Source: Guillardia theta CCMP2712
Lineage: Eukaryota; Protista; Cryptophyta
Direction: 5' to 3'
NCBI RefSeq assembly: GCF_000315625.1
Contig: NW_005434520.1
Location: 21,250-57,384 of the forward strand
Length of the DNA: 36,135 nucleotides
Positions within the stretch are counted from its first letter, which is position 1, and each line of letters begins with the position of its first letter. The notes beneath the pieces are model-generated. The model saw only the letters and a program-made list of their open reading frames with translations. It did no database searches and was not told where the DNA came from. The position numbers were made by a program, and so were the translations under genes. Shown here in pieces: positions 1-31,849 of this stretch.

Positions 1-12
1 AGTTGTGCTCAC

Positions 13-87
13 TTCAAGATGGTCTCGTCCTCTTTCCACTTCTCCATAGCTGTTTGCATGTCCGATGGATCAAGCTGAAACCAGTCA
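13..87 (-). CDS. Possible internal exon of a gene running off the window (DWFQLDPSDMQTAMEKWKEDETIL)
   Basis: Minus strand: TAG acceptor at 90-88 after a CT-microsatellite tract, GTGAG donor at 12-8, open frame between them. Confidence 0.3.
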
Positions 88-113
88 CTATGATGCCAAG
101 AGATGGGGTTAAC

Positions 114-198
114 GAGAGGAGAGGAGAGGAGAGGAGAGGAGAGGAGAGGGAGGGAGGGAGGGAGGGAGGGAGGGAGGGAGGGAGGGAGGAGAGAGAGA
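114..198. repeat. (GAGAG)n/(GAGG)n microsatellite
   Basis: Seen directly. Confidence 0.95.
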
Positions 199-331
199 TG
201 TAGGAGAAGATCGAATGCTTCAAGTATCTTGTTGATAATAGTTTACATCCTTCGCCTCCTCTCCCTCCTACTCTACAAGCCTGACGCACTGCGCTAAATT
301 AAAGGCGAAGCCCCCGCCCCCTTCCCCCCTC

Positions 332-559
332 TCACAGCTCCTGCTCGTCCCCGCACGCCCCCGTGATCCTCCTGTGCTCCTTGATCATGGCGATGCATGC
401 ACGGAGGGCAGCGAGCTGCTTGGCGGGAGAGGGGGGAGGAGGAGGAGCTAGGCAAGAGGAGGAGCTCGGGAAGGAAGAGGACGAGGGCAGAGGAGGGGAG
501 GGGAGGGAGGCCAGAGGAGGAGGAAGGGAATGATGCGAGGAGGGATCAAGAGGAGACAT
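332..559 (-). CDS. Small Pro/Ser-rich protein family, copy 1 (MSPLDP...AKQLAALRACIAMIKEHRRITGACGDEQEL*)
   Basis: ATG at 559, C-terminal motif shared with 7 other loci, TATATAAA on the coding strand at ~741-748. Confidence 0.7.
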   Translation of the reverse strand: MSPLDPSSHHSLPPPLASLPSPPLPSSSSFPSSSSCLAPPPPPSPAKQLAALRACIAMIKEHRRITGACGDEQEL

Positions 560-2156
560 TTGGAGGAGGAGCGTGAGAGAGGGGGAGAGAGGAGAGGGAA
601 GGGAGCGCAAGGGCGGGGCGAGAGAGGGGGAGAAGGAATGCCGAGGGGTTTCACCGGTCACGAGGAATCTTTGTGCAAGGAGTCGGATTTCACAGAGTCA
701 AAGGGAAGAAGAAACTTGTTAGGACAGCGATATGTTGCCTTTATATAGCAGGCTGCTGTCTTTCTGCCTTGGTAAGAAGCCCTCTGAGGCGAAGAGGCTT
801 TTATACTCTGGAAAAGATTTTTTTGGAAAACGTATCAGCGCTGCTGACACACCTTTAGTCAGCACTCCAGCGAAGAGGTGCGATTTGGCGACAAGGGGCC
901 GCTATGAAAAGGATTTAACTCGGGAGGCGGCCGCCCTCATTGTTCCCAGACGAGAACCGGGGCTCTCCGAGTAAAACAAGTCACGGTCCGGTCAAGATAC
1001 CACGGCAGTGCAGCCTGATTGATACTTGACTCGTACGCCAGAATCTTTGCGAGATGACTCAGTGAGCCAAAACTAGCATGATATGATCTTGAAAATGAGT
1101 ATAAAAGAATCTTTCAAGCGAGTCCGATCACCTCTGATCAGGCCCGTGTTTGTTTCCGAACGGTTCGTTTGATGCAAGAATCAACAACTCGGACAGCCTG
1201 GTGACTTGGAGCGGCCGCAGCACACAGTGACCCAAGGCAGTGACAGCAGGCTCCATGCAACTGCCCGTTGAACTGACAGACTCGCGGGCGGGCCTGGCTG
1301 CCGCGGGCGAAGTTTAGCGGGCCAACCCCTCCCTTCCACACAATAACGGAACACTAGTCACTGTCGGCGGTGGCAGATCTTGGTAGCGCATTTTCAGTTG
1401 GTTTACCCCTTCCTGGCTTCGTTTGTGACATCAGACAGAGAGAGAGAGAGAGAGCAACAGAGCAATCACTGCTGCGTTAACTTGACTAGAACACAACGAG
1501 CACGACTGGCTACCTGTCAGAGCTCATCATGATGAACCGAGCCCGAGTCAGACACATTGAAAGCCTCCGTTTACTGGAAAGAAGGACAGTGGGCTGTCTC
1601 GTACTCGTGTTTGAAACTGACTTCTCCAGGATATCCCAGGAAACTCTACCCCAGCTGTCGGCTAGGGAATAAACCTTTAGTTTTGGTACGGTGTACCACA
1701 AGGTGACCAGGTACAATGTTCTACCCACACTCCTATCTCAAGCTCTCAGGAGACTTGCCTGCAGTGTTGGCGTTTGCAAGAATGTGAGCTCTTTTTGAAG
1801 CCTTCCATCGACCAAGAGAGCGTCCGATCTTTCTTTTCGTCTTCTCTCGATTCCTCTGGTAAGCTGCCATCTCAGACCGCAGCCCCCCCCCCCCTAAACA
1901 AGCTCTTTGGAACCTTTGCTTCCACCTAGATACCATCCGCTGGTCTCGAGCATCGCGGAATGCTTCTCAAGCTACAAGTATGATGATGGTCGCTACCGAC
2001 ATGTGAGCAAGGAGGAGGGATGGCTGCTAGATGGTTTCCGAGTGTGACGTGAAGGATCTGCTAGCGCTAGCTGTATCATGCGTGCAAGGAAACACAAACT
2101 TAGTAGGGTGTCATGCCCCAATGGACTAGAGCGAGCAACTGTCAAGTATTGTTTGG

Positions 2157-2680
2157 GTATCTTGTTGATAATAGTTTACATCCTTCGCCTCCTCTCCCTC
2201 CTACTCTACAAGCCTGACGCACTGCGCTAAATTAAAGGCGAAGTGCACGAAGCCCCCGCCCCCTTTCCCCCTCTCACAGCTCCTGCTCGTCCCCGCACGC
2301 CCCCGTGATCCTCCTGTGCTCCTTGATCATGGCGATGCTTGCGCGGAGGGCAGCGAGCTGCTTGGCGGGAGAGGGGGGAGGAGGAGGAGCTAGGCAAGAG
2401 GAGGAGAAAGCTGGAGTAGGCGAGCGGAGGGAGGAGAAGGGGAGGGGAGGATGAATGTCGAGAGGAGGGAGGCATGAGGGGGGGGGAGTGGGAGGGATCG
2501 ACAGGAGGCATTGGGAGTGTGTGCGTGAGCGTCTGAGAATGGGACGAAGAGAGGAGAGGCGGGGGGGGGGGGGGGGATCGGAGGCAAGTGAAGAGAAGAG
2601 GAGGATGAGGGAAGGGGGCGGTGGCGAGGGCATGCCTACGAGGGCAGATGCCAAGGGAGGGGGTTTCACCGGTCACGAGG
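2157..2680. repeat. Direct duplication of 226-665 (copy 1/copy 2 unit including 3' flank)
   Basis: Near-identical from GTATCTTGTTGATAATAG through the C-terminal motif; both units end at TTCACCGGTCACGAGG. Confidence 0.9.
2274..2511 (-). CDS. Small protein family, copy 2 (AKQLAALRASIAMIKEHRRITGACGDEQEL*); the ATG homologous to copy 1 is out of frame
   Basis: MPPVDPS start at 2511 lies 238 nt from the stop (3n+1). A G homopolymer at ~2478-2486 could be a real frameshift or an assembly error. Confidence 0.55.
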
Positions 2681-3458
2681 GTTCCGCTCAACTCGCTCCA
2701 AGAAGTCAAAACCTGCTATACTTGACTCAGCCGAGCTGCTGCCCCACCGACTCATCAGGCTGATCCTAATGAGCAGAGTAGAGGTGGAGTGCTGCCCCAG
2801 TTTTGACCTCCGCATCTCTATTATTCTTGGGAACAATAACTTGGCAACAAGGGCGGCGGGCCGTGATTCTGACTAAGTCACGGCACCCAGCACGTTACCC
2901 GTGAGGCTAGAGCAGAGAAGATCTCAGATGGGGCGATCTCGGAGAGCAACAGCCTCCGACTCCCGTAAACACTCTTGAAGAGAAAATCTAGAACCGTCGC
3001 AACTGCCTTATTGCTCAGCCGCTGTCAGATGCCCAACCTTGCAGCACCACCGGGCCAGGCGGGTTAGTTGGTTGTTCTTTCACTTAAATTACCAGCCGCG
3101 GGTGATGATCAAATGACCTGCTGCCAGCAAAACAAATGAAGAAATCAGAAGTCACCATGGCCACCAACAGATGCATGTATGAGGCAAGAGTAAAACCTTC
3201 TGTTTCCAGGCAACAGACTCTTCTTGCAGAATAGAATGAGCGTCCTCTCAGAGAAGAGATTCAAAGAGACTCTTGTCGAAAGAAACCCATAGGACTTCAC
3301 AAGGTGATATGAAGCTTCTTCGTGGTTAAAAGCTCCTGCTCTTCATCCTACCAAGAACGACGATACACGACGTGGGAGGAATAGATTGGGTATTTTGTTG
3401 TTTATTAATACACTCGCACCGTACAAACGTGATTCTTCTTCCCTCAAGCAGACCCTCC

Positions 3459-3632
3459 TCACAGCTTCTGCCCGCGTCCGCACGCCCCGAGTGAGGAGAG
3501 GGAGTTGGGCATGGGGAGGAGCTCAAGAAGGAAGAGGAGGAGGCTGGAGGACGGGAAGTGAGGGGAGGGAAAGAGGGACGTGAAGAGGAGGCTCTCGCTA
3601 CCGCGCCACCTGCACGCTCATCGGTCACAAGG
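3459..3632 (-). pseudogene. Relic copy 8 of the small protein family (ends GACGRGQKL*, helix deleted)
   Basis: GGG GCG TGC GGA CGC GGG CAG AAG CTG TGA matches the copy 1 tail. SSSSFLSSSPC lies upstream in another frame. AATAAA is ~50 nt downstream. Confidence 0.6.
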
Positions 3633-3739
3633 CGTTTATTGTATCATCATAGCTCCTACACATGTACACTCCTGTCTCAGCCTATCCTACTCCCTGCAGT
3701 CTCATCTGCAGCTTCCCTCCTGCCTCCCTTGCTTGCCCT

Positions 3740-4048
3740 TCACAGCGTCTGCTCTCTCCCCATGGCGTCTTTGATCCTCCTGTGCTGCTGGATCATGGCG
3801 ATGCTTGCCCGCAGAGCGGCGAGCTGCTTGGCGCGCGTCAGGCCCAGAGGTGACGCCGCAGTAGGTCGAGGAGGGTAGGGGCCGGAGAGCAGGGCGGGGA
3901 GGCTGAGGTCGGGAGTAGGAGGAGGCAGGGGCGGCAGGGAGCATGAGTGAGAAGCAGAGCAGCAGCTGGACCGAGAGGGGAGAGGAGCTCGCAGAAAGAC
4001 GTGAGGCCTCAGGGCGTCGGCATCAGGGGCGAGAGGAGCTGGAGACAT
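3740..4048 (-). CDS. Small protein family, copy 3 (MSPAP...FLRAP...AKQLAALRASIAMIQQHRRIKDAMGREQTL*)
   Basis: Intact 102-aa ATG ORF with the conserved motif; AATAAA on the coding strand at ~3634-3639. Confidence 0.75.
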   Translation of the reverse strand: MSPAPLAPDADALRPHVFLRAPLPSRSSCCSASHSCSLPPLPPPTPDLSLPALLSGPYPPRPTAASPLGLTRAKQLAALRASIAMIQQHRRIKDAMGREQTL

Positions 4049-5587
4049 GACGAGGGCAGGTGTTGTCGTAGGAGGAGGTGAAGGAGGGGATCAGAGAGGA
4101 TCTGGAGGGTCAGGCGAGCGATCTGGGAGCGTGGCAGGGGCGAGGAGGAGGCGGGAGGGCGACGGGAGGCAAGAAGGCAGGGCGTCTACATGGGCACAGG
4201 TCGGGGCATGGAGTCCTCGTGATCGGGGAATCCTGGTGTATCCATAAGGAGTCATAGAAGGGGGCGAAGGAGTCAGAGAGGTTTGGGGATGTGAGGGTGC
4301 GGGAGCTAGGAGAGCATCGCTGTCCTGCCTGGACAGTAGGAGGAAGCTCTGAGGGTAGCCCGATACCATCGGCCGCCAAGAGATCGGAAAATCTGAAAAT
4401 GCAACGCTTTGGAGACAAAAAGGATATAAAAACGGCCTCGGACTCTCATTGTTCCCGACCTTCCAACAGTAACTCAGCTCGGTCCTTGATCAGCGACTGC
4501 CGGTCACGAGACTCATTCAATGAGCGCCGCCGCCGGGCCGTCGGATTGTTCCGAGAGTTGGCCGCGAGTCCGATCAGCACCGGCCGCCGCGGGCGCCCGT
4601 CCGACGCGGCCTATGTAAGAACTCGGATAAGTTCTTGGAGACGGCGAGAAGTTCAGGGTATTGCGTCTCATTGGTGGACGAAGCTCAGCGAGATGAGATG
4701 GAAGTGGATTTTGACATAGGTCTGGAATTAGGGAATCGATCGGACGAGCCTGAGGGTCAGGCATGAAGAGGGGATTAGTTAGGTGGACACGTGTCCTAGC
4801 GCGCAATTCTGCATTGAGGTGGAGAGCAAGGGGTGAAGGGAAGGTGTTTGGTGTGAATAAAGGAGGTTTGGTGGAGTTGAGTGTTTGATCAGAGAGATCT
4901 TCTGGTCACCGTAAGTTGTGTTGGAAGGTTGTACAGCTGCACGGCCGCGCCGCAGTTAGGCTGAGAGCCCCGGCGGACGGTCCGTGGCAATTGAAGCCTC
5001 ACTGCGGCCAAAAGCTCTCGCCCCGTTGAGGGCCCACCGTCGGGTCGTGATCCTTGGTAGCGCCTGACGGTAGCCTCCGCTCTCAGCAGCGACTGGCAAG
5101 CCGCACTGACTCAGCTAAGTCACTCAGCAAGTTGGCCCGGACAGCCCTCAGTAAGATTGCAATGTGACTCATATAAATGCCGCACTGAGTCACTGGCACA
5201 CTTGCCGAGTGCTCTTCCGCATCTTAAAGGCCGCTAATCCCGAGTCCAGGCGGCTCAGTACACTTGCCACCAGCCTGTCCACCCGTGGGGGCCGTGACTC
5301 AGTGACCGTACGGTACCGTACTACGGTACTACCGGTACTATACGTGGTAGTACCGGGTCCGACCGTCGGTCTGTCAGTTTGATGACCGTACTGTGATGGT
5401 TACTCTCTGTAACCGCCCGGGCATTTGAAGGGGCAAGTCAAAAGTTTCGAGTACTCACTGATCACACTGCAGTGATCCGACGGACATTACTACTGGCAGC
5501 TCATTTACTACAGGAGGAATACTCCGAAGGGTCGCAGTTAAGTCAGCTTGACTGGCTCCCGCGTGACGGGAGCCAGTCAACTCCCTC

Positions 5588-5794
5588 ATGGCATCTCGGA
5601 CTCCCAGCTCTCCTCCCTCCATGCCCCCTCCCCTCCCCTCCCCGCTTCCTCCAGCCCCTCTCACTGCCGTCTGCCAGCACAGCGTCCCTTCCCTCAGCAG
5701 CGCTCGCAAGCGTTCAGCCTTGCAGGCGAGCATCGCGATGGTGCAGGAGCACCGGAGCATCACCACCGCTTTGGGTCAAGGACAAGCGCTGTGA
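5588..5794 (+). CDS. Small protein family, copy 4 (RKRSALQASIAMVQEHRSITTALGQGQAL*)
   Basis: Intact 68-aa ATG ORF with the conserved motif. Confidence 0.7.
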   Translation: MASRTPSSPPSMPPPLPSPLPPAPLTAVCQHSVPSLSSARKRSALQASIAMVQEHRSITTALGQGQAL

Positions 5795-6526
5795 CAAGAG
5801 CCCCCGACCGACGGTGTGAGCAAGAGAGGGAGAGGCGCGGGCGGGGAGCTTGTCTAGTGAGTAGGGCGTTTGTTTTCATTTCATTGGTAAGTGGATGAGA
5901 AGCAGCATATCGCTCAACATGTCACGATAAGAGATCGTTTACCTCCATTATCCTCACATCTGTTAACATCAAGACGTTCGTTAGAGGGTCTTGCTGCCTC
6001 CATGACTGATAGCCAGGTGAGAGCGATGTCTCGGCGATCTCTGCGGGTAGAGATCGAGCTAGACACGTCATGGCACATCCTAGAGAGTCCGATCACTCGA
6101 CACAACTGCACACACAAGGTTGATTGAGAGTGATCGAGTAGCTAGCTCTGCTTGTGATCTTCTCACAGCCACGTATCACACACACCTCGAAGCTTTGCGG
6201 GTTTCAGACGTCTAGAGCCAATGCTCAAGGCACCTCCGCTGGATCAGATGAAGGTGAAGTTGTGATGTCGAGTTTACTAGCGATGCTAGATCAGCGTGAC
6301 ATACAACATGAAGAGAGAACAGACCCTTCTAGCTGATATTACATAGCTGGTGTTGGCGAGAGGCCGAATAGCATACAAATGAATACTCATCACAATATCA
6401 AAATCATTACAGTATTTCTCCGTATCTCCCTGCTCCTGATAGACCGAGTTCTGTGTCAACATCGTAACAGGCAACTGGGCATGGCAGGGCGTCGAGACGT
6501 GTTGAGGCCTTGTAAAGCTCAACTCG

Positions 6527-6790
6527 TCACAGGGCCTGTGCTTGTCCCAAGGCATTCATAATCACCCTATGCTCTCTGATCATGGCGATGCTGGCGTGTA
6601 AGGCAGCCACCTGCTTGTCGGAGCTGAGAGGGCAGTATGCGCTTGCACCGACTTGTGGGCGAGCGGGAGAGGGACGATGGACGAGGAAGGAAGGGAGGAG
6701 GGGAGGAGCAGGAGCAGAGCATGGAGAGGGAGGGAGGGGGCGAGGAGCTCGTAGGAATGTGGGAGCAGCGGGCATGGCGACCGTCTCCAT
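6527..6790 (-). CDS. Small protein family, copy 5 (FLRAP...DKQVAALHASIAMIREHRVIMNALGQAQAL*)
   Basis: Intact 87-aa ATG ORF with the conserved motif. Confidence 0.72.
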   Translation of the reverse strand: METVAMPAAPTFLRAPRPLPPSPCSAPAPPLLPSFLVHRPSPARPQVGASAYCPLSSDKQVAALHASIAMIREHRVIMNALGQAQAL

Positions 6791-6925
6791 CCCTGATCTT
6801 GCAACGTTTCGAATCGGTCACTTTACGGTAGCCATGCAAGTAAGGTACCAGTCTCCGTACGCTTTTGGGCACAGCCGTTGAAGAATCACGTGCAGCAAAC
6901 TGAGAGTAGTAACAATCGTGATACC

Positions 6926-7150
6926 ATGTGCGGCCAGACCCCCGCGGCATCTCGGACTCCCAGCTCTCCTCCCTCCATGCCCCCTCCCCTCCCCTCCCCG
7001 CTTCCTCCAGCCCCTCTCACTGCCGTCTGCCAGCACAGCGTCCCTTCCCTCAGCAGCGCTCGCAAGCGTTCAGCCTTGCAGGCGAGCATCACGATGGTGC
7101 AGGAGCACCGGAGCATCACCACCGCTTTGGGTCGAGCACAAGCGCTGTGA
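6926..7150 (+). CDS. Small protein family, copy 6, a near-identical duplicate of copy 4
   Basis: 6947-7208 is nearly identical to 5590-5852; in-frame ATGs at 6926 and 6977. Confidence 0.65.
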   Translation: MCGQTPAASRTPSSPPSMPPPLPSPLPPAPLTAVCQHSVPSLSSARKRSALQASITMVQEHRSITTALGRAQAL

Positions 7151-7652
7151 CAAGAGCCCCCGACCGACGGTGTGAGCAAGAGAGGGAGAGGCGCGGGCGG
7201 GGAGCTTGTGGAGGCCACCAAGTTTGGGTGAGTGATGAGTAGTCTTGTGATGAGTAAACTAGTGAGTAGGGCGTTTGTTTTCATTTCATTAGTCAGTGAC
7301 ATCCTCAAATCTCCATCCCTATAAGTTTGAGTCAAAGATCCACTGGTCTGACTCGGAGAAAGCTGCTGCTGCTGCTGCTGCAGCTGCTCGCTCCATTCGA
7401 CTTCTTCCTCAGAACTCTCTTCAGCAATTTCTGTTTGAAATGCTCCTGATTGCTTAGATCGAGGTTGAGGGCTCCTTTCCGGCTGAGGTTTCTTTCCTCC
7501 TCGTCCTTGTTTCGAGGTCATGAATCAACCACTTCGCTTCCAGAATGTTGTATACACAACACAGAGATTGTCAACGACACGAGTAAAGTAAGGATGAAGA
7601 AGATAGAGATGCAGAAGATAGAAGTCTCTAAGTTTACTGGGAGGTAAACTAC

Positions 7653-7867
7653 TGTTAGGATATGCTCCTAAACTGTGATTCAAATAACAGTGCGAGTGAT
7701 GCGCAGCAGTTCCTTCAAGAAACAAACAGTATCTACGATCCGTAAACCATGCACGTGAAGTTTATTCTTTCTCAATTTTCCTTAAATATAGAGGATTAGC
7801 TAAACTAGGAATCTGCCTCAGATACCTCAAAATAAAGTAAGTAAAGTTAGCACAATAAATCCTATCA
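7653..7867 (-). repeat. 3' LTR (215 bp), termini TGATAGGAT...ATCCTAACA
   Basis: TG..CA ends with an 8/9 inverted match; preceded by the PPT-like TAGTGGGAGCGAA. Confidence 0.88.
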
Positions 7868-7983
7868 TTCGCTCCCACTAGCACAACAATTGAGAATCTT
7901 CTTCACATTGTCTTCGCTGCAAATATCAACGAATCAACAAATTAAAATCCCGAATCATCATCTTCAATGTATCCGTGGTAAAT

Positions 7984-9055
7984 TCACGAGAATGCAACCA
8001 AGAATTGTCTGAAGACTTGATCGTACCCTTTCCATTTGACCAAATATTGCACTCGATTACCTTTTCCACGACGTGCTAAAATTCGTTCAACTTCGTAAAA
8101 ATCTCCGTCTTGTTGAATCAATGGCAATGGAGGTGCCACTGAATTTTCCAAATCAACGTCACGAACGTAATACGGTCTGAGCTTCGACACATTGAAAACC
8201 GTTTTCTTCAAATGCTGAAACCTTGCTGTGAATTCCAATCGAACTGAACTATCCGAAACTTTCTCCTGTATCTTGAAAGGACCAATGAAACGCAACTTCA
8301 TCTTTGCCACTGTTTCTGGTAATTTCAGATCCCGCGTTGAGAGCATCACCATTTCATCGACCTTGTAATCTCGCAGTTTGCGATGTTGCTTCATAAATTT
8401 TTCTGTTTGAATTGCTGACAACGTCAATGCATCTCTTGCGATGTCGATTGCAGCCAAAATTTCATTTCTTACCTCTTCGACGTCCTCTTCTTGACCGTCT
8501 GGTGACAAATCGACTACAGTTCGAATATCACGACCATAAATAATCTGAAATGGAGTGAGATTTGTAGAATTCCTGACTGTCGAGTTCCAAATTGTCTCCA
8601 AATGAATCAAATAATTGTCCCATAATTTTGCATCGTGCTTCAAACAAAAGATACGCAACGCTTCAACAATCACACTGTTGAACTTCTCCACTCTGCCTTG
8701 TGCCTGAGGGTGATAAACGCTGCTGTGTCTTACATCCACACTCATGAGTCGAAACAACTCTTCCCAAAACTTGAGCTCGGTAAACAGTTTCAAAATAAGC
8801 CTTAGCCGCTTGCTTTGAATTGATTGATTTCTTACAAGGATACAGAAATACTCTGTTCGAAAATTGATCAAGAAACACAAGCACGCTATCATTTCCTCTT
8901 TTCGACACTGGTAACGCTGAAAGCAGATCCACAGTAATCTTTTCAAACCTTTCCTGAGTAACCCAATGACTATGTGGAACTCCTGCTGACCTTTGCTTGT
9001 AAGACTGTGCCTGTGAACACTCGGAACATGAGTTGACGTAGTTTGTCACATCTCT
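7984..9055 (-). pseudogene. Integrase-chromodomain remnant, frameshifted
   Basis: CSEC zinc half, DLLSALP..VFLDQFS, YHPQAQGRVEKFN, FIGPFKI and YEVERIL..QYLVKWKGY. A deletion/frameshift at ~8770 removes the usual IVSDRD segment. Confidence 0.92.
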
Positions 9056-9332
9056 TGCCGGATCAACACCCTCTACAACTGACGGTTGAAGATGTCACCT
9101 TAATCGGTGCCCACTGCGATGCCTGGATCACCTTCAATCTGGCTCGATCCATACCACAATCGCCCTTCTCCAAAACTACAGTCCCGGCATACATGTACGA
9201 TGGATACTTTCCTATGTGATCCATCGAACAGTAGTCCTCTTCTGCCATACCATCAGCTTCCACAGCCGCCTTCACTTTACCCATCAAATGCATCTTAATA
9301 AATTGACTGTAAAGTCCAGAAACGAAATTTCT

Positions 9333-10172
9333 TTAATATGCTGTTGCCATCAAATATTTCCGTCGAAACTTGTAACATGCAATGATGTGATTGGCACCCT
9401 GTCCAATCTGGCGAACATTTTTCTTTTCAAGTTTGATGCTCAACCAGTTTCGCAACATCCAAATCCCCATTACCATTACCCGGTAAGGACATGGCCTGCT
9501 CCTCGTACGGTCAGTCCGTGGAACCATCCAACTGATCCTCTTGTCCCCAAAAAGCGACGCTGCCATTGCATTCCGATTTTTCTGATGCTTGCATTGCACC
9601 TCTACATCTCGCAACCAAGTCACAAGTGACTTATCAACATCGACAATCCCATCGAATAGCGACACATACTTCATACCAATATTGCAGGTACAACCCGATG
9701 CATCCTGTTCATATGTGGACCCGTTATCCAGAGCACTCTTTTCCTCAAAATGCTCTATACTTTTGACTGAATGTGCCAAACAAGCTTGAGTCCCCGACGG
9801 CATTTGCTCTGGAAGTACTTCATGGGTTCGCTTAACTTGCTCCATTTCCATACGCATAGCATCTACTAGTCGACTCAATGTTTGACAATTCGCACGCAAT
9901 TCATCGTTCTCCTCTTGGAGATCCCGATAAGTCACCAAGTTGCCCTTCCTCAGTAAGAACGGTTTTTGTTGTACATCATCCATTCCCAATGTTTTCGGCG
10001 CAATGTCCACGCCACGTCCATCCATGGACTCTGGCACAAGAGAACCTGTCTGCCCCGATCCTGGCACACAAGATTGTACCTCACAGATCTCAGACTTCTC
10101 CCGTTCACAAGTATTGATTCTTTCTGGAGAACCCCTCATGGTATCTCTCATGAAAGTACCAAACTTTGACAT
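9333..10172 (-). CDS. LTR element ORF1 in the gag position, with a coiled-coil-like segment; unrecognised
   Basis: 279-aa ORF just downstream of the PBS; the frame stays open up to ~10247 (YVCEQCSSW). Confidence 0.5.
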   Translation of the reverse strand: MSKFGTFMRDTMRGSPERINTCEREKSEICEVQSCVPGSGQTGSLVPESMDGRGVDIAPKTLGMDDVQQKPFLLRKGNLVTYRDLQEENDELRANCQTLSRLVDAMRMEMEQVKRTHEVLPEQMPSGTQACLAHSVKSIEHFEEKSALDNGSTYEQDASGCTCNIGMKYVSLFDGIVDVDKSLVTWLRDVEVQCKHQKNRNAMAASLFGDKRISWMVPRTDRTRSRPCPYRVMVMGIWMLRNWLSIKLEKKNVRQIGQGANHIIACYKFRRKYLMATAY

Positions 10173-10324
10173 TCCGGGCCAGATTTCACCATACCAGAAA
10201 TCCCAGAATTGCCAGGACGAACATTGTTCGCAGACATAGATCCACTGTTAACCATGTTTTCTTGATTACTTCGCTACAAGCCGCTGAAATTTCACGAAGT
10301 GAAAACCAACCTTCGCTACCAAAA

Positions 10325-10453
10325 TGTTAGGATATGCTCCTAAACTGTGATTCAAATAAGAGTGCGAGTGATGCGCAGCAGTTCCTTCAAGAAACAAACA
10401 GTATCTACGATCCGTAAACCATGCACGTGAAGTTTATTCTTTCTCAATTTTCC
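10325..10453 (-). repeat. 5' LTR, truncated (outer 86 bp missing)
   Basis: Matches 7653-7781 with one mismatch, then diverges abruptly. Confidence 0.9.
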
Positions 10454-10643
10454 CGTTTGTCAGTTGCCGGGCGTCAAGGTGTTGAAAGGCAAGCGTTGAA
10501 GGGCTCCGAGTAGCCCTCAGGCTCAGGCATCCTCACTTTCGATGCGAAGCTAGACGTTTCCGGCCTCTTGTCTCCATCGCTCCCGAGGCTTCACCCTTGC
10601 CAACATGTGCGGTCGTGTTGAGGTTCTTCCTATCCCCATCTCG

Positions 10644-10920
10644 TCACAGGACCTGTGCTTGTCCCAAGGCGTTCATGATCACCCTATGCTCTCTGATCAT
10701 GGCGATGCTGGCGTGTAAGGCAGCCACCTGCTTGTCGGAGCTGAGAGGGCAGTATGCGCTTGCCCCGACTTGTGGGCGAGCGGGAGAGGGACCGTCGATG
10801 GACGAGGAAGGAAGGGAGGAGGGGAGGAGCAGGAACGGAGCATGGAGAGGGAGGGGGGGGGCGAGGAGCTCGTAGGAATGTGGGAGAGGAGGCGGCAGCG
10901 GCAGGCGGCGTCACCATCAT
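10644..10920 (-). pseudogene. Small protein family, copy 7: paralog of copy 5 with a 4-bp frameshift (tail ...HRVIMNALGQAQVL*)
   Basis: Aligns to 6527-6760; extra CGTC at ~10793-10796 relative to copy 5. Confidence 0.7.
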
Positions 10921-11169
10921 GGCCGCTCCAGAGGAGCAAGATACACTAGCAGCGGCTACCTCGCAACCTTTCGTGCAGTGCTGGGCCCCTGGCAGGACCC
11001 CCTCCATCATCATCTAAAACCGAGGGGTACTGGTACACTTTGAGAAACCGTGACCGGCGCGGAGCCCGTCACTGGCCGCCGGCCCAGCTCGGGCCGGACG
11101 CCGGCCGGGCCGGACAACGCCGACTCGCCAGGCCTGCCAGGGCGGGCCTGCTCACCGGGTCACTGAGGG

Positions 11170-13127
11170 CCATTCTGTAGGATTTTGGGCAGGTAGGCAT
11201 ATACGGTATCTTGTAGGGTAGTCCCTGGGAATCGAGGGGTGGTTTAGGGATTTCAGTTATTTGTACCAGGTAATTTGAGACCTTACGAAATTGATTTCAA
11301 ATGTTCACTAGAATAATTTTTATATGTCAATAACAGTACAAAATGAAAAATATTTTATTTTGCTGCCTCCTTGTCCTTCACTCACCGGCATAGATGCAAA
11401 CCATCTGATCCATTGGATGAGAAGCAGTTGAGAGAGACAATGACACAGGTGAATCAGAAGCCCAACATGCATGTGTGCTGGAAGGCTTGCGACGGATGTG
11501 TGATTCGGAAGCTTACACATGTGCTTTGAGTTTTTCAATGAGAGTTTTCCTCTGAAATATTTTATTTTGCTGCCTCCTTGTCCTTTGCTGATGTGGACCA
11601 TTTGATGAGAAGCAGTTGAGAGAGACAATGACACAGAAGGTATCGCAGATATCTGGAAGCCATGCAGCCCAATGATCGTTGTGAGAGCATTCAAACGGAT
11701 AATCTCCGTGTTTCACTTCCCTTGTTACAACACTGCGCGCTGGAGAGTTCACAGATACTCTGCAGAGATGATTAGCTTCTCAAGAGACTTTCAGATAGAA
11801 TTCCAGCAAGAAAAGCATGCAGGCTTGATTTTGACATATATATTCCTGGATTCAAATGAATACTTGCTGTGTCGCAGAAAATTATTGTTGATGCAAAGCT
11901 TGACATCTGACTTGCAGCGAAAAGCAGCACACTTGCTGCTCAGATGCAGAGATGTTAAACCAAGCTTTATTTGAGAGGACCCTCAACTTTGGTTTAGTAA
12001 ACTATCATTAAGCTCAAATTCAATCTACCATATTGAGTGGAGGAGGTTATCTAACATATGGAAACACACTCTGACAATCTGATTATTACGATCAGAAAAT
12101 CAGAAGTGTTGCATGAATCAGTATCGTAGACCATAAATTTTATAGGAGAACATCCGCTTCGCACCTGCCTAGAACATTTAAAATGAGGCTACCTACATCT
12201 GATTGATGGTACAATATGCAGCTATGAGGAAAGCTTAACGCATTTGGGAAATTTCCTCAAATTTTTCCTGGCCCAAACTCTCTTCATTGTCACGAGTCTT
12301 TCCATACCATCTTCGAAGAAGCAACATTCTCTTCATACATTTACATGTGTCCATGCTTCTTCATACGTTTGCATGTGTCCATGTTAACTGTTGCAGGTTC
12401 TGACAGAAATCCTGTATAAACCTCAGAATGTGCTTCATAGGGGTTAAGAAGGTAAATATGACTGGGCGGCTCATCTGCAGGAAAATCTTCAAGGCTATTC
12501 AAAACTTTCCAAACATGAGGAGGATACGATTTATCCTAGACAAACACATGACGACAACGCCTTGTGTTGTGTTGCTCCCGGCATGTAACATGCCAAAGCC
12601 CCATTGACGGTGAAATTCGCATCCTTGCTTGCCATGCAGTGTTGCTTGTAGAAAGAGAATGCTTGGGATCTCGAGAGACTCTGCTCAATCATCACAATCT
12701 CATGCTCTGTTGTAGAATGATGCCATTCCAAACATGAATCTTCTTTGGCTGCGGTGGGACGATTTCCACCCACCCCACATAGATTTTGGGCTAAGCAGCA
12801 CCGGTATGTTGTGACATTCTGTACGGGATTGGAAGTTCCTGGTAACAATATGTAAACATCATGTATGTGTTTATATATATAAAAATTAATAAAACGAAAA
12901 TAATACAAATGTCTAACTGACTCATACAAAAATAGCTATCAGATATTTGAACAAAAACACGCTGTATTAAAACTAATTCAACGACCCCTCTCAAACAATC
13001 CAGGTACCACCACCCCCTTATTCAGGGGAAACCACCGGGTCATTAGTCATAACCGGTACTGGGAGATCGAGAACTGACAAAAAGCCACTTTTCCTTGGTT
13101 TTTCCTGGGCGAAATCCTACAGAATGG
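11170..13127. mobile_element. Putative non-autonomous TIR DNA transposon, ~1.96 kb, AT-rich
   Basis: Perfect 16-bp inverted ends CCATTCTGTAGGATTT (11170-11185 and 13112-13127), extending imperfectly to CAGG. G-rich left and C-rich right subtermini. No clear TSD or transposase. Confidence 0.7.
11348..11637. repeat. Internal imperfect direct repeat (11348-11448 vs ~11556-11637)
   Basis: AATATTTTATTTTGCTGCCTCCTTGTCCTT and GATGAGAAGCAGTTGAGAGAGACAATGACACAG each occur twice. Confidence 0.85.
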
Positions 13128-13136
13128 GCGTCTCTC

Positions 13137-13300
13137 CTGATTGTCCTCGTACTGATTTTTAACTTAACTTTGAGTAAAGCAGCGAGGATTTTATTTAAAG
13201 TGCCTTTTACTCAAACTTAAGTTAAATGAATACAAAAACCAGTACGAGGAGAATCAGTTTTACTCAAAGTTAAGTTAAAAATCATTACGAGGACAATCAG
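13137..13300. repeat. Palindromic element: 42-bp inverted arms plus a third degenerate copy
   Basis: 13137-13178 matches the reverse complement of 13259-13300 at 41/42; degenerate copy at ~13206-13257. Confidence 0.9.
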
Positions 13301-13363: not shown

Positions 13364-16947
<3,584 letters not shown>

Positions 16948-17009
16948 TCTGCATGCTAGAAAGTTGCTAATCCCCTCGAGGAGGAGATTCGTGGTTGACT
17001 TGCGGTTGT

Positions 17010-17844
17010 CTATCTTCGAGATGGCTGGTTCCCTCCCTCCTATCGATGACGAGCAAGTAGGTATGAGCGAAAGGAATCAGAAGGAAAGGAGGAGAGACGA
17101 GGTTGAGATGGCTCGGGAAAAGAAGAGGAGGGAAGAGAAGAGGAAGAGAAGAAGAAGGGAGGAGAAGACAGGAGAGGGGAGAGGAAATGAAGAGAAGATA
17201 GATATGATGGGGATGGGAGGAGGGGAGAAGAGAAGAGGGGAGGGAAAGAGAGGACGGAACGTGGCGGGAAGGGAACGGAAGGGGGAGGGGGGGCGGGACG
17301 GGAGGGACCTTGTCAAGCTCGTCTTGCTGCTTCATCATTGACTCCAACATCCTGCAACCAGCGCGTCTCTCACTGTCCAGCCTCTCCCTCCCTCCCTTAC
17401 AAAAAGTCCTCTTCTCTGAGCATGTCCATCGCGCCCTCCTCGTCCAGTCCTTCCAACCTGACGGCCAACGTCAGCTCATGTCGCAGCAGGACGTGACTAC
17501 TGTTCTTGAAGCTTCTCCGCCTGATCGCTCCGCCTGCCATCGCCGTCATGGTGAGGAGGAGCAAGCATGACGACACACCTGCTGCGAAGCGCCTCCTCAA
17601 TCGCCCTCCTCCTCTCATACCCTTGCACGAACTTCGCAGCTTGTTCCTCACTGTGGTGAGAAGCTGTCAGAAAAGATCCTCCTGCTCCTCCTCCTCCTCC
17701 TCTTGCTCACGCGTTCTTCTTGGGGGGACAAGGAGCAAACGGAGAAGTCGGAGAGATGGCAATAGAATCGCATGATGACACGTTGAAAACTTCCTCCAGC
17801 CTGATCGTTTCCGAACATGCTCTTCCTCTTCGTCCTCCAAGTCT

Positions 17845-17896
<52 letters not shown>

Positions 17897-18136
17897 CCTT
17901 CTCCTCCTCCTCCTCCTCCTCCTCTTTCCACAACTCCAGCTCCTCCTTCCGCCACCCTCGCGCTCGCTCCTCCTACTGTCTGCTGTGACTGTCCCGTGTC
18001 GGCCTCATCGTGCTCCAGCCCCAGCACAGCTGGGATGGGAGGTCGTCGGATTATCATCCTGTATCCGAACCTCTTCTGTCGTAGCAGCATATCCTCCCTC
18101 CTCCTCGCTGTCTTCTCCACCACTTGAACTCTTGTG

Positions 18137-18186
<50 letters not shown>

Positions 18187-21107
18187 ATACAGATGAAGTT
18201 GCTGGTTCCAATCCAATTCCTCATAATCTTCGAAATCTTTCACATCATGCTCGTCTCCATAGTTTGCCAGTCGCTCCAGTTCCTCCAAATTGTGCTGCTG
18301 CTGCTGCTGCCATCTCGAATCCTCCTCCTCCTCCTCCTCCTCCTCCTCCTCCTCTTCCTCTTTCAGTTCCTCTAGCTCCTCTAGTTCATCTACGAGCTGC
18401 CGCCGCTGCTCAGCATGTCCAATTTCTCCCCTCAAACTCTCATCAGTTGCAATCTTGTCCAGGCGGCATGGCGTGGTTTGCCACTCACTGTCCTCATACG
18501 ACATCTCCTGCTCCTGCTCCTGCTGCTCCTTCCCCCCTCCCCCTACCGACCTCCTCTCCTGCTGCTCATCTTCCTTGGACAAGCTTCGCCAGGGAGCGAC
18601 AACCAGCTTCCTCAAACTGACCAGCAGGACACGCTGAATCGCTCCTCCTCCCCGCTCGCTCTCTTCGAACTGCCAGTAGCATTCGGAAGGAGCGACACTG
18701 CTGTAGAGGAGCTGGTCGAAGAGGACTTTCCCGCTGACCTCCAGTCTCATCCTCCTCACCGTCACGTTCAGCTTCACGTCCTCCCTCCTCACGTCCTCCT
18801 CCACCGGCCACAGCGCGTTAATCCGCTTCCGTCCATCCTTGAACTCGACACCGTCATCCCCTTCCCCCTCCTCCTCTCGCCCGACGTTGCCATGGTCTGA
18901 AGTCGCCGCCGCCTCCTCCTTCTCCTCCTCCTTCTCCTCCTCCTTCTCCTCCCCCGAGCCGAACTTCAGCCTGATCTCCTGGGCCGCCCTTGTGCCGTTG
19001 GTAGCAAGTAAGTTGGTGCTGCGAAAGAAAGCGAAGCTAGCATCCTCCCCGCACGCTAACTGGTAGCACAGCAGCTTCACCGAGCTCTGAAGCGTCAGGG
19101 GGCGAGGAACGAGCACGTCGCTGCTATGAGCACCTAGCAAGAGCTGCCCCTTGTCGTTCCTCCCGAAGCACAGCAAGCTCCCGTCCTCCGCAAGGGCCAC
19201 CGTGTGCATACTGCCGCATGCAACCTGCAAGAACCTCATGCTCCTTGCGCAGACAACCCGGGCAGGAGCCAACCGCCTCCTCCTGTCGCCCATGCCCAGC
19301 TGGCCGTGGCTGTTGCTGCCCCACGTTAGGAGGCTTCCGCCTGCAGTGATCGCTGCCGCATGTCGCCAGCCACATGCCACATCAGCAACTCTGTGCGCTA
19401 GGGGGATGAGGGTGGGCACTGTGACGGTCCTGCCTATCCTCCGAGGGTCGGAAGTATCAGCTGCCTCCTCCTCTCTCCCCGCATCCCTTCCTGCCTCCTC
19501 CTCCTTCCTTGCTCGAGCCGCTCCCGAGTATCCTAACCCAAGTTGCCCATCGTCATTAGAACCGCATGTGAACATGGAACCGTTTGCGAGGAGGAAGATT
19601 GTATGCTCCTTCCCGCAAGCTATCTTGAGGATGGAGGAGGAGGAGGAGGAGGAGGAGGAGGAGGAGGAGGAGGAGGAGGAGGAGGAGGAGGAGGAGGAGG
19701 AAGGTAGAATGACCCTGTGAGGAAATGCAACTTTGCTCTCGAGGCTACCAATGCCCAGCTGTCCTCTCCTGTTGTCTCCAAATGCAAAGATGTCTCCTCC
19801 TCTCGCCATCACCACAAACGTCTGAGCAGGTCCACACGCCACATCCTTCACGTCCTCGCCCTTTCCAGTAGACCATCGAGTGAAGGAACGAGCTCTCCTC
19901 CTCCTGTTCTGACCCCTCTCCTCCTCCTCCCCTCCTCCTCCTTGATCCCGAGCTGCCCGTGCGAGTTGTCCCCAAAGAGAAACAGCCCCCCTTCAGCGTC
20001 GACCATTGCGCTGTGACGTGAGCCGCATGACATGTGGGACCAAGCTCGATCCGACAAGCTCTTGATCAGCACAAGCCCTCTGCTCCTCTTCCTGATCCTG
20101 CTCAGCAATTTCGGATTGCCTACTGGTACGTCCTCGTCCTCGTCCTCGACGTCCTCGTCCTCGTCCTCGTCCTGCTCTGTACAAAGCTCCTTCTCCTCCT
20201 CCTCCGTCATCCCCAGCTGCCCACAGGTGTTGTCTCCCGCCCCGTACAGCAGTAGCTTACTGTTGGCGGCCACGAGCACGAGCGAATGTGCCGATCCGCA
20301 GCAGACCTTTCGGATTGTGCTGCGAGGAAAGTTGAGGGAATGCCTACAGGTGCAGGAGAATGTGGACGAGGGAGAGGAGGAGGGGAAGAAAGAGAGGGAG
20401 GGAGGGGAGGAGGAGAGGGGAGAAGAGGAGTTACGAGGAAGCGCGAGTTTCCCTCCCCTGTTTGATCCAGCACACAGCACTCCACTCTTCACCCCTTGCA
20501 GCACAGAATCCAGACTACCCGCTGCTCCTGCATTGCAAGCAAAGCATCTGCTCCTTGCATCCACTCCGTCGCCTTCATGTCCGTCTCCCTCACGTCCGTT
20601 CCTTCCTGCGGAGGAGGACGGTGCAAACTCCAGTTCCTGGTCCCCAACATCACAGGCAGCGGAAAGCTCGTCTGCCCCACCTCCACACACTAGATCCCCA
20701 TCAACGCTACTGCCCTCGTCCGGTATCTTCACTGCAAGGTACGTTCCATCCGCCTCCTTCTTTCCCACCTTATCTGCAGCCTGTGTCTCCGCCTTGTTGT
20801 TGGTGTACTTGGAACCCATTCTCCTCATGGCGTTTTGATACCTTGCGGTAGCTGCCCCGGCATCGTTGTCTCCCGTGAGGAGCTGCTGCATGTACAGCTC
20901 AACGTCAGAGGTTTCGAAGGATAAGGCGTTGTTGATGCTGTGGGTCGCTGGAGGAGGAGGAGCACTTCCGCCACGTAGTGTGAGAGAAGGGAGGGAAAGG
21001 AGAAGACGGCGAGTCAGCCTCCTCTCGCTTGCTCCTTGGATGTTCGGCTGGTATGTAGATACTAGTGACGCGAGAGTGACAAGAATCATCGTTATCCCTC
21101 CCTCCAT
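17010..21107 (-). CDS. RCC1-repeat beta-propeller plus CS (p23/NudC-like) domain protein with an N-terminal hydrophobic leader; frame break at ~19850
   Basis: Multiple VACG..H..GxNxxGQLG repeats and a CS-like segment (VRREDVKLNV..ECYWQFE..LVSLRK..WRSL). Short 3' exons splice in frame to TAG at 17012-17010. Confidence 0.85.
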
Positions 21108-22926: not shown

Positions 22927-23464
22927 ATTCTCATCACCTGAAACCTATCTCGATTGCAATGAACATCTCGTACGAGTATTAGGATGAGTTCTGACCAATC
23001 CCACAAACCTAGAACAAAGTTCTTGCAGCTCCGCCGCTTCAGGGCGTGACTTGCCGTATGATCAGGACGTATCTTCCAAGCCTCTAGTAGATGCTCCGAA
23101 AGAACTTTTCGGTAAGATGTGCGACTTGAGTGGAATGTATGGTTGGCAGTAGGGTCAACCAAACGGGAGCCAGTCTTCGGTGAATGCCCTCCTTTCCTGC
23201 TTACTGTCGTGCTTGCAACTCCAGATCAGTGTACACTGATTCCATGGTCCTAGTCAGTGTCTACTTCCCGTCCCTTGATGCTGATCGCTCCTCGTTCGCC
23301 GTCTCCCCAGCGCTCGTTCCCCATTGAACATCGGCACATGGCTGAAGCCTGAGCAAGAAACAGAAATTTGAAGGCCAATACGAAACAAATTTATGTGATG
23401 GATTTGATTAGTTCAAAATTAGGAGCTATGAATCAAATCATTCTGAAGTGAGACACAGAATCCG

Positions 23465-23504
23465 TTTACTCAAAGTTAAGTTAAAATCAGTACCAGGACA
23501 ATCA
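23465..23504 (+). repeat. Solo copy of the 42-bp repeat
   Basis: TTTACTCAAAGTTAAGTTAAAATCAGTACCAGGACAATCA matches 13259-13300. Confidence 0.9.
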
Positions 23505-28641: not shown

Positions 28642-31491
28642 TTTCAATAACTTGTGTTTCGAAATTTCTTTTGTAAATATTTTGTGTTTGGGATCACTGA
28701 AATAAAATATGCAGAAAAATTATGTGCTTGAAACAAACTAACTGAAATAAAAAAACTTTGACAACAATTTATCCATTGCGATTGTGATTGTAGATGTAAT
28801 GTTCATCAGACTTTCCGGGCATCATGTCCATTGGTCACTTCCTGGTGGAATCCAAATCAGGTTGCAAACTTTGAATTCACTTAACAGTCCACTCAATCAA
28901 GCGATCATTTCGTGCCATCACATTGATCATCTTTCTGCAAACGCCTCATTCCGTGTATAAAAAATTCCGAGCCTATAAATTTGTGCCAATACAATGTGTT
29001 GCACACTGGCAGTGTGTCATAATTCTCCGCTGACATTCCAGCCTCCAAACTGATGTGGAGTCTGAATTCGAACAAGCAGCCTGTCACAGAAAAGAAATAG
29101 TGTCAAAACAAACCACCAAGAAAACAATCAAGGATCCTCAATCATGTATTGATATGTTTAAGGGACCTGGTACAAGCGCTAGCTGCAAACAAAGCACAAA
29201 CAAAGGTAACAATAACAAATTCACGCATGCAACCCCCTCAGAGGAGCAGTGGCAAGCTTGTTTGTGGGTGACTTCTTTCAAGCAAATGGTTGAAGTTCAG
29301 TTCAGATTGAATGCAGTGGATCAAATTCAAAAAATAAAAAAAATAAGAAAATGAAGAAAAGATATGTAATTACATGCTGGACAAAATCATTTTTTTCTTT
29401 GACAGCATACGAAACAAATATTCATGGCAAATTCATGGCGGAAGAGAAATGCACGACCAAGCGAGCCATATTAACAAGATAATTCACAGAGCGACATCGG
29501 GGGGATTGTATAAAAATTTATGATCTTTCTTTGATTGTGACATCATGGGAACAGTATAACACAAGGCAAAAGGCAAAAGGCAGCGTGCAGGCTGACTATT
29601 CAAGAGGCCAAGCAACGTCTTGTACAAAATGTGAGAGGGACGGGGGGCAAAAAGCCTGCATCCCGCTTCCCGCATCCTGCAGTTTTCTCAATTGTACAGA
29701 GGAAGAGAAAAGCAAAAGCGAGGAGCAAAGGCTGGGCAAAAGAAAACTGCGCGAGGGCAAGCTGTGTTTTGGCTTAGGGGAAGGGTTGCGTTCTTGGGGC
29801 TGGAGGGGGCGAGAGGGAGCGGGAAGTTGGGGTGGGAGGGATGCATTCTGAGAAGATCAGAGTAAGAGAAGGGAAGAGGGATCTGTGATATAGACCGACG
29901 CAACAAGAATATCAGCATGAGCGTCGGCGGCAAACAAGGGGAGGGGCTACCATGAAGGCCAATGATGTGTGAGAGGAGCGTCTTGAACAGAGGAGGTGGG
30001 TAGTGACCCTCACCCCCCTGATTAACACCAGATTGTATCTACAGACGTGGGTACTTCTCATACTAAAATGAAATCCACATGGCATCGTCTTCCTAGGACC
30101 ACCACCCCTACCCCCTTCATCCCACCCCCTTGAGCATCCCACAAACTCCTCTCTCCAAACAGGGGAAGGTGGTACCACCCCTCATATCTACGACCCTGTC
30201 GTAGTACCCCACCAGGTTCTCACAACCATCTGGTACCTGTATCACCCTACCCCCCTCTCCAGGAAACATATCCATCCGTGTACCCTTTCAATAGTACCCC
30301 ACCCTGGTCCCCACGACCACCTTGTGAGAATCTTTACACTTTGGGACAAGTTTGTAGAATGACCTTTTGTGGCCTTAGACCCCCACCCCCACTGTTCTAT
30401 GACCCTCTACCACCCTCTTTATATTTGATAACCCCCCACACTTGTACTGATATTCCGACCACCCTCCTGTCTTGGTGCGAGCACCCCTATTGCTCCATCC
30501 CACCAAGATTTTGGACTCTCAACCCTCCCCTGCAAGAAAACCAGAACCCCTACCCCCTGTCGAGCATTATATTTCCATCAATCAGGGCAAACATTGTGCC
30601 TTTGGCATATTTTCCTATGACGGTAATTGAAATATACTCTTGCATTACATCAACATCTCTACTCCTCGCCCCGCCCTGAGCTTTGCTGTCCCATGGACCA
30701 CCCCCTTGCCTCCCCACCCCCTCGGCGTTTCAGAGTTCTTTGCCGCCGCCGCGACCAAGTTTCCCCCAAACAACTTTGTATTCGGTAGAATGACCCACCC
30801 CACCCTCGTAAGTTGAGAGTCGTGGACTACCTACCCGTGGAATCTATTAGTTCGCAACACCTGCATCACGGGTCCCCATCCGAATGCCCCGTGATTACAC
30901 CACCCCCTCTCTACTAGAACTAGTCGAAAGTACCCTATTTACAAACTACCCGACTACCCTACCCAATCCTGTGTTTGCAGGGGTGCTCTGGCGACGAACA
31001 AGGGAGCGACAAACAAGAGGGTAGGAGTACCTTTCCACCGGTGTTATTTCCCTAGAAAAAGAGGGTTCAAATCAGGTGTAGTATCTTTTAACGGGGGGTG
31101 GTGGGGTCATTTTTAGAGGAGTTCGTGAGTGTTTTTAAAAGTGGGTTTTTTTAAAAGAAAGTGTCTTAGGGGGTGGGGTTATGCAATGAGGGGGGGGTAG
31201 TGGTCAACGGGGTTATACAAATTAGTTTGTGACTGTTTTTGGCCCATTTTTTCAAATGTGTTGGTACTGCCAACTTTAGTCATCATCGCCGAGCTGGAAC
31301 TGACCGGAGGCTCCGGGCCGCCCGGAGCCTGAGTGACGGTACCGCACTGGCACCGTCGCCGGGCTCACGGTGATCGGGCCCGTCGGATCTTGCCATGATC
31401 ACTGAGCGGTTTGGTTCTCGCTGTCTTTTCTCTTCTCAGTCTCGCCGTTTGGCCTGTGCGACAGTGTCAGGGTCAACTTTCAGCCTCCTCG

Positions 31492-31544
31492 ACTCTCCTG
31501 ATTGTACGGTCCTCGTACTGATTTTTGACTGAACTTTGAGTAAA
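31492..31544 (-). repeat. Solo, slightly diverged copy of the 42-bp repeat
   Basis: CTCTCCTGATTGT(ACGG)TCCTCGTACTGATTTTTGACTGAACTTTGAGTAAA matches 13132-13178. Confidence 0.88.
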
Positions 31545-31849
31545 GAGTCACCGATCTGTCACTCAGTGTCACTGATTGAGTCTCCGCCGGGCCCCCCCGG
31601 GCCGGGGGCCCGGCCCGAGCCGCGGAGGCTCAGTGACTCAGTGAGTCGGCGATCGGACTCGCTTGACTCAGTGAACGGTCCGTCACGGTAGTCACTAGGC
31701 TCAAGACTCCCGTCAGTTAATCAGTGTGCCAGATTGATATCCCGGCGATCAATCATTCGAATGTTCTATGTTGTTCTTCTATGTGTTATTTGCAGTTCCT
31801 CGTCACTACTTGATCTATCCCGTACATTCAAAGTCACGGTCATGCTCGT

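Follow-up and report, generated by a model that had tools for sequence, protein, structure and literature searches.

The DNA analysed here, a stretch of 36,135 nucleotides (nt) from Guillardia theta (C154:21250-57384, referred to as the window), raises the question of whether a group of short open reading frames (ORFs) that end in the same motif encodes proteins of a new kind. The original prediction, made from the letters of the sequence, was of a cluster of at least eight paralogous microprotein genes with selection acting on the protein. Our analysis shows that these ORFs belong to a real, new protein family with an unclassified mini-domain. The explanation that we regard as probably correct, taken as a whole, is that the family consists of small proteins of about 60-130 amino acids (aa), with a variable, disordered N-terminus and a conserved C-terminal module, and that the members found in the window are a local cluster, decayed in part and nearly silent in transcription, which makes up a minor fraction of a family with over 100 members.

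Motif copies were located in the window with a six-frame regular expression and a family hidden Markov model (HMM), and exactly seven are strong family members (family-profile E = 1e-17 to 1e-24). Their stops lie at 332, 2274, 3740, 5794, 6527, 7150 and 10644, the ending CTG TGA is found in all seven as predicted, and the module at their C-termini is about 33 residues long with 12 columns invariant across the seven. The eighth copy counted originally is a relic, one of the seven strong copies is frameshifted, and the seven represent only four sequence types, designated A to D. The copies, and the transposable element (TE) that lies among them, are as follows.

332-661, minus strand: copy 1, type A; 75 aa from the first ATG (coding sequence 335-559, stop 332-334); E 6.6e-22; TGTAA signal 85 nt 3' of the stop
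2274-2669, minus strand: copy 2, type A; recent duplicate of copy 1; E 7.6e-24
3459-3617, minus strand: type A relic; Pro-rich part, last ~9 residues and CTG-TGA kept, helix core deleted
3740-4048, minus strand: copy 3, type B; ATG ORF of 102 aa with FLRAP near its N-terminus; E 4e-22; AATAAA 100 nt 3' of the stop
5588-5794, plus strand: copy 4, type C; ATG ORF of 68 aa; E 2.1e-19
6527-6790, minus strand: copy 5, type D; ATG ORF of 87 aa with FLRAP; E 1.6e-17
6878-7150, plus strand: copy 6, type C'; first ATG at 6926, the ATG of copy 4 being lost
7653-10453, minus strand: Ty3/gypsy chromovirus fragment, internally deleted, between copies 6 and 7; not a family member
10644-11013, minus strand: copy 7, type D'; frameshifted pseudogene

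Three of the four types are recent duplicate pairs. The type A pair (stops 332 and 2274) is 98% identical over a 159-nt core around the motif and 86% identical over 375 nt with gaps, the type C pair (stops 5794 and 7150) is 99% identical in DNA (5590-5853 versus 6946-7209), and the type D pair (stops 6527 and 10644) is 93% identical; type B (stop 3740) is a singleton. The duplicated DNA is short (264-375 nt), corresponding roughly to the coding region and up to ~100 nt downstream, and its flanks are unrelated. Copies 5 and 6 are arranged head-to-head with ~135 nt between their ATGs. In copy 7 a 4-nt insertion (GACG, 10793-10796) puts the FLRAP-containing N-terminal part and the module in different frames, the module frame has no ATG, and the copy is therefore classed as a pseudogene. 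The relic had been described as keeping only the tail of the motif, and it does match only the last 9 positions of the family profile (hmm 36-44, E 3.9 alone); in addition its DNA at 3493-3564 is 79% identical to 436-507, the Pro-rich part upstream in copy 1. The Ty3/gypsy fragment encodes an integrase C-terminal SH3_Tf2-1 domain and a chromodomain (7984-8946, minus strand) as well as a 279-aa coiled-coil-like ORF (9333-10172, minus strand), and is flanked by 129-nt direct repeats with 99% identity. Recent duplicates, a frameshift, a relic and a TE fragment between copies agree with the birth-and-death evolution proposed for the cluster. The window copies are absent from the annotation and belong to sub-types other than those of the two annotated G. 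theta members described below; a word-based protein search with copy 3 gave no match, not even to itself, which indicates that this copy is unannotated. With the profile as query, this kind of search returned only five short matches, a consequence of its length filter. Rfam and tRNA scans of positions 1-12000 found nothing relevant.

Purifying selection acts on the module at the level of the protein. The argument first advanced for this was the use of different synonymous codons at conserved residues, and the codons listed are exact (Leu CTC/CTG/TTG/TTA, Ala GCA/GCG/GCC, His CAC/CAT, Arg AGG/CGG, Gly GGG/GGT/GGA). Among 18 non-redundant motif sequences of 33 codons each, the pooled ratio of the proportions of non-synonymous and synonymous differences (pN/pS) is 0.64 in the motif frame, and the other two frames give 1.05 and 1.25. 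The ratio of non-synonymous to synonymous substitution rates (dN/dS) has a median of 0.5 in the motif frame; a value near 1 had been named beforehand as one that would refute the prediction. Nucleotide diversity at codon positions 1, 2 and 3 is 0.39, 0.33 and 0.47, respectively, the third position being the most variable. Old pairs retain this pattern, with pS 0.73 and pN 0.24 between types B and D, for example, and pS 0.4-0.77 and pN 0.15-0.26 among old, saturated paralogues in general. Many copies also have TGTA-type and AATAAA-type signals 70-115 nt past the stop.

Six-frame profile searches of the G. theta assembly (87.1 Mb, 669 contigs) gave 50 matches with a profile built from the seven window copies, and 126 when the profile was widened with 16 diverse members. 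The family thus has at least 126 copies in this genome, 125 of which are free of internal stops, and the open frames around them are almost all 60-220 aa long. The copies are strongly clustered in arrays of 4-9. Direct arrays occur on contigs C81 (6 copies), C20 (8), C79 (4) and C70 (4), an alternating head-to-head array of two sub-types occurs on C274 (9 copies), and the profile matches seven copies at C217:45044-55294, a region also matched by the annotated protein GUITHDRAFT_121231. Mirrored pairs are found on C80, C102, C46, C33 and C45, and several of these are inverted repeats with 98-99% identity. The arrays that were read contain only genes of this family. Reading in detail covered 34 members of the less divergent sub-families, lying outside the arrays on C81, C20, C79, C217 and C280. 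The module stands exactly at the C-terminus in 24 of the 34 and is followed by a tail of 12-46 residues in the others, and ATG ORFs range from 68 to 119 aa.

Outside this genome relatives are few. A profile search run exhaustively against 1.84 billion representative proteins (E <= 0.001, no length filter) returned only 15 clusters, with lengths of 61-178 aa, most of them 61-104 aa. They include the G. theta hypothetical proteins GUITHDRAFT_116959 (95 aa) and GUITHDRAFT_121231 (66 aa), one G. theta transcript ORF from MMETSP, six Hanusia phi transcriptome proteins from EukProt (in five clusters), and short, Guillardia-like environmental ENA contigs from a single project, a source shown for the four that were traced. 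Among the ENA contigs fetched, L058 and L059 are colinear with G. theta DNA at 83-97% identity and L060 shares its dispersed repeats, and on these grounds we take the contigs to be genomic DNA of a close G. theta relative. One of these contigs has a 73-codon ORF that is 94% identical and gap-free, with many indels in its flanks. In the databases searched, the family appears to occur only in Guillardia and the sister genus Hanusia. The two annotated G. theta proteins and the Hanusia phi proteins resemble the window copies in the C-terminal module (profile E 1e-16 to 1e-4), in small size and in a variable N-terminus, with FLRA or YLRAP in some; they are uncharacterised and belong to sub-types unlike those of the window. 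No protein longer than 178 aa carries the module in any database searched, and this speaks against both a TE protein and an unseen multi-domain parent.

The statement that the motif matches no known domain also held. Ten members compared with Pfam gave no family at E <= 1 except a chance-level match to Mito_fiss_reg in copy 6 (E 0.3), a PDB sequence search at E <= 10 gave no match, no relatives were found in IMG/VR viral contigs or JGI metagenomes, and an ESM Atlas feature search gave no usable match. In the literature, no paper was found that names GUITHDRAFT_116959 or GUITHDRAFT_121231 or describes the family.

The family signature, K-Q-L..L.ASI..I...R.I..A.G....L, covers about 33-36 residues at or near the C-terminus and fits the window copies. 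Its hydrophobic positions, judged from sequence, follow an a/d pattern in the helix and alternate in the strands. AlphaFold2, run with the family alignment on full-length copy 3 and then on the domain only, models residues 1-70 as disordered, followed by a helix (72-87) and two strands (91-93 and 99-101). The module blocks have predicted local distance difference test (pLDDT) values of 86-94, and the domain-only run returned the same elements, mostly at 78-93. The module is thus predicted to be one amphipathic helix packed against a short beta-hairpin, and the Gly at the hairpin turn is the sole residue invariant across 28 aligned family members. The disordered part and the helix had both been anticipated; the hairpin that follows the helix had not. 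The fold itself has no recognisable match: comparison of the full model with 48,161 chains gave a best Z of 2.4, treated as noise for a 32-residue element, a Foldseek search of the PDB with the domain model gave a best E of 2.9, likewise treated as noise, and shape matches in the ESM Atlas were only to fragments of unrelated bacterial proteins and were discounted in the same way. A homodimer prediction with residues 62-102 of copy 3 scored 0.03, which gives no verdict and is evidence neither way.

Several known elements were considered as identities for the module and set aside. The UIM, IQ, 1-8-14 calmodulin-binding, SAP, BH3, D-box and PP1 RVxF motifs do not fit the conserved positions. In winged-helix domains the recognition helix is followed by a wing, a beta-hairpin with a Gly turn. 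The module resembles this arrangement in having a helix and a beta-hairpin with a Gly turn, but lacks the first two helices; only one helix and the hairpin are modelled, there is no profile, PDB-sequence or structural match, and a winged-helix DNA-binding domain was rejected. The cryptophyte phycoerythrin alpha-subunit family, a small nuclear multigene family for which a bipartite targeting signal and a match to the Pfam phycoerythrin alpha/beta-type model would be expected, was rejected on the absence of a Pfam match and on N-termini that, by inspection, are not hydrophobic signal peptides. A TE or viral protein was also rejected: no Pfam TE domain is present in the members tested, there is no IMG/VR relative, and the Ty3/gypsy fragment is a separate insertion.

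Some members of the family are transcribed and at least one is spliced. Transcription is seen in the MMETSP ORF and in the Hanusia phi transcriptome proteins. The MMETSP database protein (P0001), aligned piece by piece, maps to the mirrored pair on C102 (L033/L034, 253014-254323) as two exons separated by a GT..AG intron of 778 nt, with the coding part of exon 1 at 253279-253323, followed by GT, and exon 2 at 254102-254323, preceded by AG. The acceptor lies 50 codons upstream of the module, and splicing adds only 15 codons to give 89 aa. The public 95-aa model of GUITHDRAFT_116959 is unspliced, and its N-terminus differs from that of the transcript-derived 89-aa ORF. The partner gene mirrors this two-exon structure, so that in this pair each first coding exon lies antisense in the intron or 5' region of its partner, and such a mirrored, interleaved and spliced pair is an unusual gene arrangement.

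Lineage-restricted, expanded families of small proteins are a known phenomenon. Plant VQ-motif proteins and microProteins of the LITTLE ZIPPER type are small and largely disordered with one short conserved interaction element, occur in expanded families, and exert their effect by binding larger partner proteins. The Guillardia proteins are comparable in their small, disordered build with a single conserved element; they have no sequence or fold kinship with the plant proteins, the module has no parent multi-domain protein in the databases searched, and the likeness is one of working principle by analogy only. A helix-hairpin of 33 residues is too small for catalysis, and for this reason we suggest tentatively, as something possible rather than probable, that the module is a docking or oligomerisation unit that tethers the disordered tail, which would make these proteins small regulators of the adaptor or inhibitor type. 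Its binding target would be a conserved cellular partner or else other members of the family, contacted by the module through the hydrophobic face of the helix and the free edge of the hairpin. The N-terminal part, which is variable, apparently disordered, mostly Pro/Ser-rich and in a subset marked by [FY]LRAP, would evolve fast and supply variable linear motifs or spacing. The regulators would probably be expressed only in particular conditions. The family may have spread by tandem and mirrored duplication and by copying events of about ORF size, with copies being lost by frameshift, deletion and TE insertion.

A number of observations weigh against functional small proteins of this form, above all in the window. 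RNA depth over copies 2-6 is essentially zero in four RNA data sets examined over window positions 2000-7500 (the raw-read run was sampled at ~6%), with the 3' end of the type A copy 2 covered by about 3 reads, and these copies may therefore be silent or dying. Absence of transcripts had been named beforehand as grounds for refutation; locally, over copies 2-6, this is essentially what is seen, whereas the family as a whole does have transcripts. In the 240 nt ahead of each motif, pyrimidines make up 61-84% of the coding strand and stops are few in all three frames, so that an open Pro/Ser-rich frame is weak coding evidence. Since the choice of ATG falls within this tract, protein lengths are uncertain, and the predicted range of 68-102 aa depends on that choice. 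Indels between copies 1 and 2 in their N-terminal parts have lengths not divisible by 3 (in distant pairs the low-complexity alignment is over-gapped for judging indel phase), and part of the 'disordered tail' could be non-coding. The pentapeptide FLRAP, noted originally in copies 3, 5 and 7 and found in all three, is in frame with the module, as FLRAP or YLRAP, in copies 3 and 5, in members on C80 and C23 and in two Hanusia proteins, copy 7 being the frameshifted case. Paralogues share their ATG positions, and so do G. theta and the related ENA genome. Both features speak against purely non-coding N-termini.

These features of the upstream DNA also bear on a different gene structure, in which each module would be the last exon of a longer gene with several exons and the Pro/Ser-rich 'N-termini' would be intron polypyrimidine tracts before AG acceptors. 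Such AG sites lie just ahead of the conserved part, the C102 member has its acceptor 50 codons upstream of the module, and no RNA over the window copies fixes their structure. However, that spliced member reaches just 89 aa, no match in the exhaustive search exceeds 178 aa, transcript-derived Hanusia ORFs included, the in-frame pentapeptide extends to divergent members, and no longer known gene or TE protein carries the motif; we consider the terminal-exon structure improbable. It is less probable still that the copies are non-functional repeats, either decaying pseudogenes or the passive ORF of a small mobile or retroposed unit, whose conservation reflects recent copying. The duplications in the window do span only the ORF and 3' untranslated region, with unrelated flanks, the region is TE-rich, the window copies are nearly silent, and the motifs of copies 6 and 4 differ by 3 non-synonymous and 0 synonymous changes. 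Recent copying does not account for saturated paralogues that still have low pN while off-frame controls stand at about 1 or higher, nor for open frames in all but one of the 126 copies and a module kept in Hanusia transcripts; there is no TE or viral domain and no viral-contig match, and the arrays hold only these genes. A reading in which the head-to-head pairs act mainly as RNA, with antisense 5' ends or read-through hairpins giving rise to silencing small RNAs and coding being secondary, would fit the antisense first exons of the C102 pair, the pairs that are nearly identical inverted repeats, and the low expression of the window copies. It leaves protein-level conservation and in-frame synonymous changes unexplained, many arrays are direct rather than inverted repeats, and we find it hardly credible.

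Within the family of small proteins that we favour, the head-to-head paralogue types (D and C in the window, and the two alternating on C274) allow a speculation that we regard as a long shot, namely that they encode interacting partners of a fast-diversifying recognition system. In a pair of this kind, for example a poison-antidote, self/non-self or antiviral pair, the two proteins may pair through the module and owe their specificity to the hypervariable tail, and antisense-overlapping 5' exons may couple expression of the two genes.

G. theta provides the reference cryptophyte genome, and a family of more than 100 genes is nearly all missing from its annotation, only two annotated members having been identified. 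The present practical value of the result lies in better annotation and in a defined 36-residue bait for partner hunting.

Other elements were observed in and near the window. An 82-nt element at 4614-4695 (plus strand) has at least 40 genome copies at 74-100% identity, most above 85%. Its raw-read depth is ~231x, with the first mate almost always on the plus strand, and contig depths reach ~25,000; the reads are loose-ended on both sides and show variants at 4672-4674. It matches no Rfam family, is not a tRNA, and its fold stability is unremarkable (z -0.4). It may be a short RNA of high abundance or else belong, as one exon, to a multicopy transcript. Between copies 4 and 5, at 6248-6293, a short piece that contains an internal ~30-nt repeat has a high depth of 159-7069 in three RNA contig sets. 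Positions 7309-7500 form the end of an RNA contig of 530-1886 nt (depth 10-211) that is joined at 7309/7311 to sequence outside the 2000-7500 stretch, and this junction is likely to be an exon boundary or part of a TE-derived transcript. The same contig end adjoins an ORF at 6886-7521 (minus strand) that overlaps copy 6 in antisense.

Further along the window, at 13500-17000 and 17707-21107, there are genes rich in homopolymer runs encoded by trinucleotide repeats (Ser, Ala, Gln, Cys, Leu and SR repeats). One of these genes is mitochondrial-carrier-like and is broken by a stretch of N, and another encodes an RCC1-repeat protein (Pfam RCC1, E 1e-41). A dispersed repeat of ~40-140 nt that is common to ENA contig L060 and to window positions 31411-31545, 13132-13298 and 23461-23503 looks like an element of the miniature inverted-repeat transposable element type.

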